A DNA stretch of 64,000 nucleotides from Ostrea edulis (lineage: Eukaryota), in assembly GCF_947568905.1 (NCBI RefSeq), contig NC_079164.1, forward strand, positions 100,564,001 to 100,628,000, given 5' to 3'. The first letter of the stretch is position 1; each line of letters starts with the position of its first letter. A program made the translations under genes and the position numbers. Below, piece by piece: positions 29,960-49,258 of this stretch. The notes beneath the pieces are model-generated. The model ran no database searches. It was not told the origin of the DNA and was given only the letters and a program-made list of their open reading frames with translations.

Positions 29960-30467
29960 ATCAACTTAGTCCACTTCAAAATTGACTCACCAATCATCTG
30001 TAAAATCGATATAAAATTCGCCAACAATCACCAATCACCTGTAATATCGATATAAACTTAGCAAACAAATTACTTACACAAGTTTGTTTTTTCGTATTGT
30101 AGATATGACAGTGTTTTGTAATTATGATAAGTTCTGTTGAACATATGTCAAAAAGGTCCGGATATCCGGAAGTTGTCATTTCTAGAGAAAACATGCAAGT
30201 TAATTTTTGTACATGTGAATTACATACAATTTACCGGAAATGTTAAACAACGTCTTTCTGACAATTTTGGATTGTGAAAGTATCCTTTTAATACCTATTT
30301 CTTGTCAGTTATATACAGTGTTTGCTTAATCTATGAATTTGTGAGGGTAATACCAGAGGAAGGCAACTGCCGTTAGTTACGTCACGTCCATTGATATATC
30401 GTTACTGAAAATCAGATATATAGCAAAGTGTTTTCATTTTTCGAAATGCGTGTTCGTTACTTCTAAG

Positions 30468-31607
30468 ATGTATTGCTATAGTACTAATGAGTCAGTGAAG
30501 CATTGGAACCAGATCGTTTCGGTATCCAGACTGCCGTTCAACATCATCCTCGGATGTCTCCTTGTCGTAGGAGTTCTTGGAAATTCAGTCGTGGTGCACG
30601 TGTGTCGCCTAAAACAAAAGAGGGGCAACCGGTTCTACATCCTGCTATTGGCTCTCCTAGACATCCTAACCTGTGTAGATACAGTGCTCAGTGTTATATT
30701 TTTTAACTCCTATGGTGTAAACTTTCCATCAAATGTGTTGTGTAAAATAATCACTTATTTCATGTGGACGACACCGTCATCATCCTCGATTATGATACTG
30801 ATTATCGCATTGCAAAGGTTTCTTCTCGTCTACAAACCAACCAAACGTTATCTGGATCCGCGTCATCATCGAATCATCGTCGTCCTTATTGTTCTACTCG
30901 TTCCACTTGTCATTGCTTTTCCGATGTGTGTTTTTTCTGGAACTGTCGAAATGAAACTCTCATTGTCAGATGGGAGAAATATGACAAAATGTTCCTGTGA
31001 GCCCAGTTCCGGACAATACAAGGGAATTGAAAAAAGCTACTTGGTTTTTCTTTTCATCCTTTCTCTTCTTCTGATAATGATAACAACACTTCTTTACATT
31101 CCAGTAGGAATTGTAATTCTAAGAAAACGCAAAGAATCCAAGACATCAAAGGACATTCCTTCTAATTCGATGGATGATTTGGACACGGCTACCTCTGATT
31201 CAACTGACGTAAAAACCACGCTGAGAGAGGAGACACAGAAGAAACGCAGACGACCAAATAGTACGCTGAATTTCCACATGATGTTCGGGGTAATCGTCCT
31301 CACTTACCTTTTGGCATACATACCGACGTTCTGTATGCTTCTAATCCAGAGAGGAAAACCTGGATTCTGGATAGGGATGTGGGGCTGGGAGTTGACTATT
31401 CTGTTGCTCTTCAGACGATTTCATCTCGTCTCCAACATCATCAACCCGTTTGTCTATGGGTATTTTGACATCACGTTCAGAAATTATTATGTGTCTCTTC
31501 TGAGTGCAGTGTTTTGCCGTTGCAGGTCTGCGAATTCGTCTTTATCTAACTGCAACCAAGGTACGAATTCGAATGAGAACGAATTAACAGGTAGCACGAA
31601 CTACTAA
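30468..31607 (+). CDS. Intronless class A (rhodopsin-like) GPCR, peptide-receptor-like, 379 aa from the first ATG
   Basis: Seven hydrophobic helices; GN (TM1), LAxxD (TM2), extracellular Cys before TM3, QRF in place of DRY, AYIP (TM6), NPFVY (TM7). Confidence 0.92.
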   Translation: MYCYSTNESVKHWNQIVSVSRLPFNIILGCLLVVGVLGNSVVVHVCRLKQKRGNRFYILLLALLDILTCVDTVLSVIFFNSYGVNFPSNVLCKIITYFMWTTPSSSSIMILIIALQRFLLVYKPTKRYLDPRHHRIIVVLIVLLVPLVIAFPMCVFSGTVEMKLSLSDGRNMTKCSCEPSSGQYKGIEKSYLVFLFILSLLLIMITTLLYIPVGIVILRKRKESKTSKDIPSNSMDDLDTATSDSTDVKTTLREETQKKRRRPNSTLNFHMMFGVIVLTYLLAYIPTFCMLLIQRGKPGFWIGMWGWELTILLLFRRFHLVSNIINPFVYGYFDITFRNYYVSLLSAVFCRCRSANSSLSNCNQGTNSNENELTGSTNY

Positions 31608-42237: not shown

Positions 42238-42388
42238 TCAGTCCCCTCCCGCTGCCGTTTTGTTGCGTTCGTGTGTGTGTAGTTTCCGGTAGAGACTTTG
42301 TACATAGGTGAAGACGCACTTCCAGTCTGGCTTCTGCATGCGGACCATGTCCTCCACGTCCAAGAGTGGGGCAATGTCTGCACATTTC
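42238..42388 (-). CDS. SMTN-like: Ig-smoothelin-like gene, last coding exon (end of CH domain: LLDVEDMVRMQKPDWKCVFTYVQSLY...)
   Basis: tgtgtttag acceptor, phase 2; DxEDMV...PDWKCVxTY is the smoothelin-type CH signature; TGA at 42240-42238. Confidence 0.93.
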
Positions 42389-42638: not shown

Positions 42639-42812
<174 letters not shown>

Positions 42813-43612
42813 TCATCAAATACAGAAGCCACGAGGAAAGCCAATAGAAATTTCAATTCTTTGAGTTAATTACAAAATATTTTGAAATTTAATCTGAACA
42901 TAAAATATATTAGTACAGAAAAACGAATATGTAATCAAGTGATATTGTATCATGCTAATGATTAGTATAGATAAAGTGATTATGTATATTAGATATAGAG
43001 ATATAAAAAAGGTTAGTATCACGTGGTTAAGTCCCACAACAACCTGCCCACACGTACCCCCTCCAGTTCCCGTATCGTCATACACCGCATTTGTATATCT
43101 ACGTTATGAGTTTATTGACTCCACACCAAACGTTAATGTATCTATTCTCAATGCTAATCCACATATCACCAAATGATTATCACCAAACCAAACTCAACAA
43201 TTTTTAGTAATCAAACCATAAAAAATACAGTGTTTACAGTTAAAACCAAAGCCGTTTAGAATCTTAGCTGAAATCGCAGATGTTGTACATGTTCATCTAC
43301 TACTGGTACAACAGTTCTAAGGCACGCAATACTTCTAAAGCATTCAACTCCATGCCGCTATAAACATTACGCTGTGCCTTCACAGCATAACGCCAGACCT
43401 CTACAGCATAATTACATGCTTCTAAAGCATACACTTTTGCAAATGTAGAAAGCATTCTACACAAATGGCAGCATACGAAACAAATATATGTACTTCTAGC
43501 ACTTGTACATGTACAACTTCTGCTTTATAATTCTAATCAGCGACCACGACAACCTTGGTAGCTCATGCATGACTATTCGTTTCCATGACAATGGCATGCA
43601 GTCATGCGTTAC

Positions 43613-43718
43613 CTCATATTCCCGCGTCATGGCTTTTGTCCAATCCAGTAACATTTGTTTGATTGCGCTGGGACTTCGAACCAGAGCCCTACCACCGCCT
43701 CCCCCGGGCGCTAAATTG
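43613..43718 (-). CDS. SMTN-like: Mutually exclusive exon B (NLAPGGGGGRALVRSPSAIKQMLLDWTKAMTREYE), first CH helix, canonical type
   Basis: ttttactgaag acceptor, GAG|gtaacg donor, phase 2/0; IKQMLLDW matches recalled smoothelin. Confidence 0.88.
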
Positions 43719-44483
43719 CTTCAGTAAAAGATGCACCGATTGGTTAATCTCTTGTTAAGATATACATGTACGTAACTAATGAAAAGGCTTCCTGGAAATT
43801 TGGTTATCAACTGCAACCAAATTTCTAAGAATACAAACGTAATAAAACCTGGAAAAGAAAGCTTTGTTTGTTTGTATGTGACAGGATTTTACTAAGGTAC
43901 ACAACATAGACTAAGAATGGCAAAAATGTTAGCATGTGAAGGCATTGTTATTAGCAACACATAAAACAGTTCAAAAGTTTATTTTCCAAGGCTGATGTTT
44001 AATCAGATATCTAATGCATATATAACAATCCAGATTCTTTTGACTGGCAGTGCGTCAAAAAATAGGTTCATCTGTTTTTGAATTGTTTGAGAAGATGCTT
44101 TCGTTCACAAAGTTTGAATTTCAAGGGATGCTTTTAAAACATGTTTGATAGAGACACTCGTTTGTCAGGAAATGTAAAATACAGTACAATCCAAATCTGC
44201 CGAAATTCCTCATTAGATATCCGTTATAATGAATTATCCGTTATAATGAATATCAGAAAACTGAACTGTGTAACTACATGTGTATATATCAACATGGGCA
44301 TAAAAGGGAAGCACATTAATACACAAGACAAAAATTCAAACAACACACGTAAAAAAAATCAAGTACGAAAATCAGAAATGTTAGAGATTAAAACATGGCT
44401 GTACGCGTACAACAAATATGAGCAGTGAGATATCTACAGGTTAGCGGTGAGCCGGCGCTGACCAGCAAGGCTAGCCGGTATAC

Positions 44484-44598
44484 CTCATAATCTGCCGTAT
44501 TCTTTTGACAGAATCGGAGAATTTCCTGCTTAATTGTGACAGCATTTCGCCGCAATGTGGTGGCTGCTTTTTTGGCGTACGACACAGATAATAAACCA
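44484..44598 (-). CDS. SMTN-like: Mutually exclusive exon A (GLLSVSYAKKAATTLRRNAVTIKQEILRFCQKNTADYE), first CH helix, divergent type
   Basis: catttgtgcag acceptor, GAG|gtatac donor, phase 2/0, homologous to exon B. Confidence 0.75.
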
Positions 44599-44639
44599 CT
44601 GCACAAATGACAGAGAGCATGTTAATACAGGGGTCATAC

Positions 44640-44872
44640 AGACAAACACACGGGTACAATTATTCTTAATTCACAGACAAACACACAGGTAGAATTCTTC
44701 TTAATTCACACACACGAACATACGGGCAGAATTCTTAATTCACATACACAAACACTTGGGTACAATTATTCTTATTTCACATACACAAACACACTGGTAG
44801 AATTATTCTTGATTCACAAACAAACACACTGGTAGAATTATTCTTAATTCACACACACAAACATACGGGTAT
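44640..44872. repeat. 35-37-bp minisatellite, about 6 copies (UG-rich on the transcribed - strand)
   Basis: Recurrent caaacacac.ggtagaattattcttaattcaca. Confidence 0.85.
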
Positions 44873-45725
44873 AATATGGTACATTAAATTTTCGTTTTAA
44901 AAACTTAAAAATTTGTACCAAAAAATGCACTTAAAATCTTTACTTATAGTGGCAGTTTCTGTTTTCTGTCTTTTAACAAAGATAACATGTTTTTTGTTTG
45001 TTAAGACATGTATATAGATAAGTTCAATGCCTTTCATCCTTGTTTATTCAATCTTGCAAATTAATGCTCTCTGAATACAAAACAGTATTTTTTTCCTGAT
45101 TTCAGCAAAGTTTTAATCAGATAAGCAATGATGAAGGCATGAAAAGCTGTTTGCCATTAATAAAACAACAATGCCAAAAACACTCAAATTCATGCACAAT
45201 AATAACACTTGTGTTGAAGAATTTAACAGTATTTGCAAAATAGCATCTTATGCCTGTTTGCTTTGATGTTCAAACTTGAACTTGCCTCAGCCTTGTGCAA
45301 TATATTTGTCAAAAACTCTTATAGATCTCACTGAACATCAGAATTAAATTTACAATCAAAGTACTTCTAGTGAGGTCAAATGAAATAGATTTTAATATCT
45401 AAATTTGGTATCCAATTGATCTTATTGTAGTTGTCAAGTTTCCATAAAGCAAACAGGGTTTCTACTCAGAACACTTCAATCAGATGCTAACATGATCAGA
45501 TATCCAGACTATGGAGGTCTAGAGCATCTCCTTAAAAAGTCTCAACTACCCAACTTATCATGTATCTTTTCAATGAAGTGTCCATAATTCAGATCAAGAA
45601 TAAACAATCCAGCTGAGGATTAACTTTTCAGATCAAACAATTCTGCTGTTCTTACAAAACCTACCCTTTAAACATACACGAAATTTTTTTAAATGTACAC
45701 GAAAAAATTCAAATCAAATACGTAC

Positions 45726-45795
45726 TTTGGTTTGGGAGCTGCATTGTCCATTTTCTGGAACATGGCTTTTGCCCCTTGTGCTCCCGAGGGTTTGG
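45726..45795 (-). CDS. SMTN-like: Ig-smoothelin-like exon (AKPSGAQGAKAMFQKMDNAAPKP)
   Basis: Strong polypyrimidine acceptor, AA|gtacgt donor, phase 1/2 fits both neighbours. Confidence 0.8.
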
Positions 45796-49182: not shown

Positions 49183-49258
49183 TTTGTTTCTTTTCTCTAA
49201 TCTCCTTCATTCGAGCTCGGATCTTTTTCCTTTCTTCAAAGTTCTCGGATTTGCTGAG
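49183..49258 (-). CDS. SMTN-like: Ig-smoothelin-like exon, smoothelin-domain second half (LSKSENFEERKKIRARMKEIREKKQ)
   Basis: FEERKxIRA motif as recalled for smoothelin; tcttgtag acceptor, A|gtatga donor, phase 0/1. Confidence 0.88.

Follow-up and report, generated by a model that had tools for sequence, protein, structure and literature searches.

In the smoothelin gene of the oyster Ostrea edulis, two neighbouring exons, here termed exon A and exon B, encode different versions of the first helix (helix A) of the type-2 calponin-homology (CH) domain and of the linker that precedes it. We read them as mutually exclusive exons that arose by an ancient tandem duplication, a reading to which we assign a probability of about 0.8 and under which proper inclusion of exon A in oyster mRNA is predicted. 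In the sampled tissue exon B would be the default form, and exon A would be a minor form or one restricted to certain tissues or stages. The window, that is the whole stretch of DNA analysed, is 64,000 nucleotides of contig NC_079164.1 and is free of any N. Positions are counted from its first letter and the gene is read from the (-) strand.

Anatomy of the exon pair and its reading frames

The constitutive upstream exon U (45726..45795, (-)) was read and translated; it ends in …AKPSGAQGAKAMFQKMDNAAPKP plus two bases of the next codon, and its donor, gtacgt, follows position 45726 with the gt at 45725-45724. Exon A (44484..44598, (-)), the alternative copy, is 115 nt long and encodes the 38-residue peptide GLLSVSYAKKAATTLRRNAVTIKQEILRFCQKNTADYE, which consists of the 20-residue linker GLLSVSYAKKAATTLRRN and the CH helix A AVTIKQEILRFCQKNTADYE. 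Exon B (43613..43718, (-)), the canonical copy, is 106 nt long and encodes NLAPGGGGGRALVRSPSAIKQMLLDWTKAMTREYE, with a Gly-rich linker, an RSPS motif and the CH helix A AIKQMLLDWTKAMTREYE. An intron of 765 nt separates the two. The core of the CH domain lies in exon D (42640..42791, (-)), which begins at 42791. The last coding exon (42238..42388, (-)), read directly, ends in …KCADIAPLLDVEDMVRMQKPDWKCVFTYVQSLYRKLHTHERNKTAAGGD and the stop codon TGA at 42240-42238, and the 3′ UTR runs on below 41900.

The acceptor of exon A (...ttgtgcag/, preceded by ...ctctctgtcatttgtgcag) is strong, with a polypyrimidine tract and a TTAAC branch-like site, and its donor (GAG/gtatac) is no weaker than that of exon B (GAG/gtaacg). 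The acceptor of exon B reads ...ctgaag/ and is preceded by ...cttttactgaag. An earlier sequence-only reading of this DNA had given the coordinates, strand and peptides of the two exons, their distance of 765 nt and their shared GAG/gt donors, and all of these figures were correct when the letters were read again.

Exons A and B are both 3n+1 nt long, have the same entry and exit phase and are flanked by the same exons U and D. Because both are 3n+1 long, a productive mRNA has to hold exactly one of them. Scripted translation gave an open frame for U-A-D (...AAPKPN-GLLSVSYAKKAATTLRRNAVTIKQEILRFCQKNTADYE-NVEITNF...) and for U-B-D (...AAPKPN-NLAPGGGGGRALVRSPSAIKQMLLDWTKAMTREYE-NVEITNF...). The U-A-B-D frame continues as QFSARGRRW and then meets a stop at codon 10 of exon B, and when both exons are skipped the U-D frame is shifted and runs into a stop 20 codons into exon D. 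The translated frames thus bear out what had been proposed before, namely that joint inclusion is terminated at codon 10, that a double skip shifts the frame and that each productive mRNA takes one exon.

The smoothelin gene in the window

Judged from the encoded sequence, the gene is a member of the smoothelin family, with a C-terminal type-2 CH domain closest to those of SMTN and SMTNL1. Exon D matches the Pfam CH profile PF00307 (E 8e-11) over profile positions 22-69, and the last coding exon gives a weak CH match over profile positions 72-107, the stop codon coming after the domain. Pfam returned no match for the exon A peptide alone or for the exon B peptide alone, both being too short. 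From 'IKQ' onward, the A-type protein of the sea slug Elysia can be aligned with the CH-domain structures of human smoothelin (2D87, E 3e-41) and SMTNL1 (2JV9, E 6e-40). Because these alignments begin at 'IKQ', the swapped exon corresponds to CH helix A together with about 20 residues of the preceding linker.

The rest of the gene was mapped by tblastn with the proteins of relatives. Four Ig I-set exons (63283-55877, (-)) are matched by the long models named 'smoothelin' in Mytilus (1618 aa) and Patella (1920 aa), and a large exon of the same gene lies at 55189-54659. The homologues carry PF12510, and their N-terminal region (…DEEELHK…FEERKKIRAR…) aligns by tblastn to 49258-49184 of the window. 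A coiled-coil exon (48837-48553) and an optional exon (EEAATFLTNQLINTLSPVTSGNITIKTESWNSRNG…; 47273-47127, (-)) complete the gene upstream of the CH-encoding part, in which the order is U, A, B, D and the last exon. The gene probably gives rise to a long isoform with the Ig region as well as to a short one of about 300 aa, which starts near 49258. The optional exon was present in some isoforms of Liolophura, Sinanodonta and Elysia and absent from others. Downstream of the smoothelin gene, on the opposite strand, the window also holds an intronless-looking ORF for a rhodopsin-family GPCR (30351-31604, (+); Pfam 7tm_1, E 2e-23).

Homology of the two exons and their distribution among lophotrochozoans

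The A and B peptides have a BLOSUM62 local score of 36, compared with 15.9 +/- 3.3 for shuffled sequences, and none of 2000 shuffles scored that high. When the 64-kb window was examined in six frames, exon A was the sole other 23-residue stretch that scored at least 25 against the B helix. The shuffles, together with the alignments to 2D87 and 2JV9, uphold the earlier proposal that the two exons share an ancestry and offer alternative versions of helix A in the type-2 CH domain. By sequence comparison exons A and B are true homologues, and their duplication is old, since the two stand far apart at the DNA level.

A full HMMER scan, with exon D as the query, and a subsequent word search that started from a Lingula protein yielded 268 smoothelin-like proteins, in which the segment preceding the CH core was scored against A and against B. 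A-type segments were identified in isoform X2 of the smoothelin-like protein of the chiton Liolophura sinensis (ALVTVSLAKKAATTMRRNAVQIKAEILDFCKSNTAEYK), in the sea slugs Elysia crispata and Plakobranchus ocellatus (GLLAVSLAKKAATTMRRNAVAIKQEILYFCKMNTQEYE), in isoforms X3 and X5 of the brachiopod Lingula anatina (...FVRMNANTIKQQILNFAQANTQEYK) and in one ORF on a JGI contig. The same genes also had B-type isoforms in Liolophura (X3, X4 and X5) and in Lingula (X1), which were identical to the A-type isoforms on both sides of the segment. From the RefSeq isoform naming and the otherwise identical sequences, we infer that the Liolophura gene and the Lingula gene each carry A and B in tandem. As for the JGI contig (L001, 257-841), the gene call for its A-type ORF (P0245) reads a TGA as Trp, while under the standard code the open frame begins after that TGA; no intron separates the A-type helix from the CH core there.

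The A-type protein of Elysia (P0167) matched the window by tblastn at 44600-44484 with 74% identity (E 8e-13). Oyster exon A is identical to the Elysia/Plakobranchus segment in 29 of 38 positions and to that of Liolophura in 26 of 38, and the junction ...PN/GLL... is common to Elysia and to the predicted oyster U-A splice. Exon B was matched by the B-type proteins of Mytilus, Patella, Mactra and Sinanodonta, also by tblastn. A maximum-likelihood tree of 24-residue segments from five A-types and eight B-types displayed two groups, formed by type and not by species. The split between A and B had a support of 98/98 and was found in 100% of the bootstrap trees, and the mean identity of the segments was 61% among A-types, 71% among B-types and 37% between A and B. 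Because the helices group by type and not by species, the duplication predates the split between molluscs and brachiopods. The occurrence of A-types across species and the tree rule out a chance ORF and make a dead duplicate unlikely. On the evidence of these sequences long-term purifying selection acts on exon A, and both copies have been retained.

The A-type was not encountered among oyster products in the searches that were made. All 12 members of a Magallana gigas transcript cluster were B-type, with no A-type, and so were both members (2/2) of the cluster nearest this gene. A word search with the 77-residue stop-free stretch around exon A gave no candidate among proteins of 42-135 aa, and one with the A-type segment of Elysia P0167, covering proteins of 228-724 aa, retrieved only Elysia, Plakobranchus and Liolophura and no oyster; proteins of 136-227 aa and the long Ig-containing isoforms fall outside the range of these searches.

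RNA evidence for the use of the two exons

A run search with exon A alone as the query returned one RNA-like run, termed X1, and five DNA-like runs, of which X2, X3 and X5 are taken as DNA because introns are covered in them. X1 is labelled as a different organism, is about 1-4% diverged from the window and was available as contigs only, so that the observations below come from a single run. In X1 the exons were covered, and no intron sequence was covered apart from that in the contig with exon A.

A contig over 45726-45797, at a depth of 1170, represents exon U. At a loose end at 43717, the start of exon B is joined directly to the end of exon U (TTTTGGTTTGGGAGCTG); at a loose end at 42793, exon D reads into the end of exon B (CATATTCCCGCG); and a loose end at 42639 reads into the last exon, whose start at 42388 agrees with the junction letters GAAATGTGCAGA. 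The U-B and B-D junctions had depths of about 800-2400. Since the loose ends show these two junctions at high depth, U-B-D is the main form in X1. This run skips the optional exon at 47273-47127.

Exon B made up more than 99% of the signal in X1, and the depth of exon A was about 0.5-1% of that of exon B. Exon A occurred in one X1 contig only (record 7; 322 nt, depth 12.5), which spans 44695-44484. This contig crosses the predicted acceptor of exon A into 97 nt of the upstream intron, and on the 5′ side a further 109 letters lie outside the aligned stretch. At the other end it stops 2 letters beyond the predicted donor, and these letters are not aligned to the intron GT. That the contig does not continue into the intron GT suggests that the donor of exon A is used. 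Because no other intron sequence was covered, the contig is not part of a general pre-mRNA background. No U-A, A-D or A-B junction was seen among the contigs of this one RNA-like run. The sequence-only reading had set the U-A-D path against the U-B-D path as the two outcomes of splicing; of these, U-B-D dominates in X1, and exon A was met at a depth of 12.5 joined to unspliced intron.

In the frame of A there is a TAA at 44624-44622, and no in-frame ATG is found upstream of or inside exon A. For these two reasons the intron-retaining form of exon A has no start codon from which the A helix could be translated, and the idea of exon A as an alternative first exon of a short CH-only protein was rejected. 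An ATG at 44620 is in a different frame, which ends in the skip-frame stop. The contig that combines exon A with intron may represent a partly spliced intermediate, a cryptic acceptor or start in a 37-nt repeat upstream of exon A, or a break in the assembly.

Between X1 and the window there is one difference in exon A, which is synonymous (ACA to ACG), and there are 7 differences in the 97 nt upstream. At position 43718, the first base of exon B, the window has a C (AAC, Asn) and X1 an A (AAA, Lys); transcripts of Magallana also have Lys at the start of exon B (…KPK/NLAPGG).

Alternative explanations for exon A

The sparse signal of exon A in X1 might be understood if the exon had worked formerly and was now silent in oysters, so that what is seen is the splicing noise of a recently retired pseudo-exon. 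Its depth of about 0.5-1% of that of exon B, the unspliced acceptor in the same contig and the lack of an oyster A-type protein or transcript fragment in the databases searched would all agree with this. Against it stand the intact frame, the strong acceptor, a donor no weaker than that of B and the 29/38 identity to the sea-slug exon. Moreover, the only difference in exon A between the two oyster-lineage sequences is synonymous, as against 7 in 97 nt of the adjacent intron, and the stop of the X1 contig 2 letters beyond the donor suggests that this donor is in use. Retirement is therefore judged improbable. The dead duplicate that had been considered in the sequence-only reading is likewise unlikely, given the intact frame, the conservation in sea slugs and the chiton and the use in annotated isoforms.

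Only a little less credit is given to the explanation that exon A belongs to a larger alternative exon, 5′ or internal, with an internal start or a cryptic acceptor in the repeat, whose transcript would be non-coding or regulatory (poison). Record 7 does carry at least 97 nt, possibly 206 nt, upstream of the acceptor at the depth of exon A, while the remainder of the 1127-nt intron and all other introns are uncovered in X1. Yet the A frame has the TAA at 44624-44622 and lacks an in-frame ATG, so that the conserved A peptide could not be translated from such a transcript, and its strong conservation at the protein level would have no explanation. The A segment of other species comes after the same upstream exon (…PN/GLL…). 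Contigs cannot reveal starts, and a 37-nt repeat can break an assembly. The probability that exon A is an intronic stretch which resembles a CH helix by accident is close to nil: expression is weak only and Pfam scores neither the 38-residue A peptide nor exon B alone, but 0 of 2000 shuffles reach the A/B score, exon A is the sole such stretch in the window, the match to the Elysia A-type protein has an E of 8e-13 and the A-type clade covers two phyla.

Consequences of the swap for the CH domain

The A and B segments of Liolophura were modelled with AlphaFold2 from the same 58-sequence alignment. Both isoforms adopted the same CH fold in the models, with helix A at residues 46-60 of the 166-residue segment and a core pLDDT above 90, and the roughly 18 residues preceding helix A were of low confidence in both. 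Both were also above the Pfam CH threshold, from profile position 4, with 86 and 92 bits. The helix has the pattern IL-x-F…NT in the A-type and LL-x-W…AMT in the B-type; the near-invariant Trp of the B-type helix, which other CH domains have at that place, is a Phe in the A-type. The linker is basic in the A-type (AKKAATT-x-RRNA) and without Ser, and Gly-rich followed by RSPS in the B-type.

The swap would retain the CH fold. It would alter three features, namely the exposed face of helix A, the core position at which Phe replaces Trp, and the linker next to the helix. In going from B to A, a Gly-rich linker with a potentially phosphorylatable RSPS would be exchanged for the basic AKKAATTxRRNA, which offers no Ser. 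In the mammalian SMTNL1, a disordered region near Ser301 and the surface of the CH domain jointly bind tropomyosin; calmodulin binds nearby, and phosphorylation by PKA at Ser301 shifts the balance between tropomyosin and calmodulin (PMC5359911). By analogy alone, a difference between the A and B forms in partner binding or in kinase control, and not in folding, is proposed as the likely effect, and the linker with the first CH helix is a candidate functional surface for interactions with actin, tropomyosin, calmodulin or kinases. A link to the apo-calmodulin IQ motif of SMTNL1 was considered and set aside, that motif being located at the C-terminal end of the CH domain and not in helix A.

Exclusivity and regulation

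The sequence-only reading had suggested that exclusivity is enforced by nonsense-mediated decay (NMD) or RNA pairing and not by steric spacing. Steric exclusion is indeed out, because the intron between A and B has 765 nt, whereas steric hindrance would call for one of less than about 60 nt. The idea of RNA pairing gained no support: a screen of the three introns for docking and selector inverted repeats, made in this one genome, gave arms of 15-35 nt with 70-88% complementarity in no consistent arrangement, and nothing above what is expected of AT-rich introns. U12-type splicing (A/GTATCCTT) was rejected by eye, as none of the donors gtacgt (U), gtatacc (A), gtaacg (B) and gtaagt (D) fits. 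With steric exclusion out, no U12-like donor and inverted repeats not above chance, policing by the reading frame is what is left. An mRNA with both exons in or both out would meet a premature stop codon far 5′ of the final exon junction, and would presumably be untranslatable or removed by NMD.

The choice of exon is probably set by trans-acting splicing factors, and members of the Rbfox family are candidates. Three GCAUG, two of them UGCAUG, lie at 43564..43607 (-), which is +6 to +49 in the intron that follows exon B, and form a candidate Rbfox/Fox-1 enhancer. On both strands of the 64-kb window this cluster is the only place with at least three GCATG in 50 nt. In a downstream flank (U)GCAUG lets Fox-1/Rbfox enhance the inclusion of an exon, and in an upstream flank repress it (PMC2777236). 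The cluster 3′ of exon B, being in a downstream flank, suggests control of an Rbfox type. Upstream of the optional exon at 47273-47127, two GCATG lie within 100 nt, and the skipping of this exon in X1 alongside inclusion of exon B fits one Rbfox-type programme, as a single observation.

On the side of exon A, Tandem Repeats Finder detected a 37-nt tandem repeat of 6.5 copies (44642..44875), UG-rich on the gene strand and 44-277 nt upstream of the exon. There are 12 TGTGT in the 300 nt upstream of exon A, and the X1 contig that holds exon A runs into the repeat.

A wider scheme may be drawn from these features. The pair could be a lophotrochozoan-wide switch more than 500 million years old between a kinase-regulatable CH domain (B, with RSPS and Trp) and a constitutive one (A, basic, with no Ser and with Phe), operated by an Rbfox-type programme and contributing to differences between muscle types, or between muscle and non-muscle, in molluscs and brachiopods. 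Taken in full, this scheme is speculative and we consider it unlikely to hold in all its parts. The tissue switch put forward in the sequence-only reading, for example between striated and catch or smooth adductor, and the change of CH binding specificity that would go with it are conjecture as well.

Comparison with known systems

The same exchange of linker and helix A, within the same neighbouring sequence, is evident when isoform X2 of Liolophura is compared with X3, X4 and X5, when X3 and X5 of Lingula are compared with X1, and in the models of Elysia and Plakobranchus. The hallmarks are RxNA…IKQxILxF…NTxxY for the A-type and RSPSAIKQMLLxW…AMTxEY for the B-type. For those species the evidence consists of protein models, whereas in the oyster the two exons can be read next to each other in the genome together with their phases and splice sites, in a bivalve with no A-type product on record. 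The pair is consequently not as new as had been supposed, since it was already visible in the public gene models of other species. Either/or splicing that arises from tandem duplication is a known kind of arrangement and not a new mechanism; the isoforms are in public gene models and undescribed. A literature search on smoothelin mutually exclusive exons and on scallop, oyster and invertebrate isoforms found no description of the pair.

The vertebrate proteins SMTN and SMTNL1 (2D87, 2JV9) have the same domain in the same C-terminal position, with a helix A that starts IKQMLLDWC…. Among the matches seen, all vertebrate smoothelin helices are of the Trp type, in contrast to the Phe of oyster exon A. 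We know of no duplicated helix-A exon in vertebrates, and the literature search found none there.

The NM and SM exons of Actn1 are mutually exclusive and tissue-specific. They affect the EF hand of the protein (PMC5062968). As in the smoothelin pair, an alternative exon of alpha-actinin-1 recodes part of a module in an actin-associated protein, but it is the EF hand there and CH helix A here, and in another phylum.

Smoothelins, proteins of the muscle cytoskeleton, serve as markers of contractile smooth muscle and also modulate it. In the scallop, a smoothelin-like protein is enriched in catch muscle (PMC5963113). The exclusive exons of egl-15 and unc-32 in Caenorhabditis elegans are controlled by Fox-1/ASD-1 and by the CELF protein UNC-75, UG-rich elements being CELF-type sites and (U)GCAUG being found in the flanking introns of these pairs (PMC2777236, PMC3585155). 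The oyster pair resembles them in having three GCAUG 3′ of exon B and a UG-rich repeat 5′ of exon A, the oyster case being known from motifs in one genome. As the pair has been kept since before molluscs and brachiopods diverged, the two versions of linker and helix should do different jobs. Few mutually exclusive exons are known outside arthropods, nematodes and vertebrates, and to these the oyster pair adds a well-defined and deeply conserved case that has a candidate Rbfox element.
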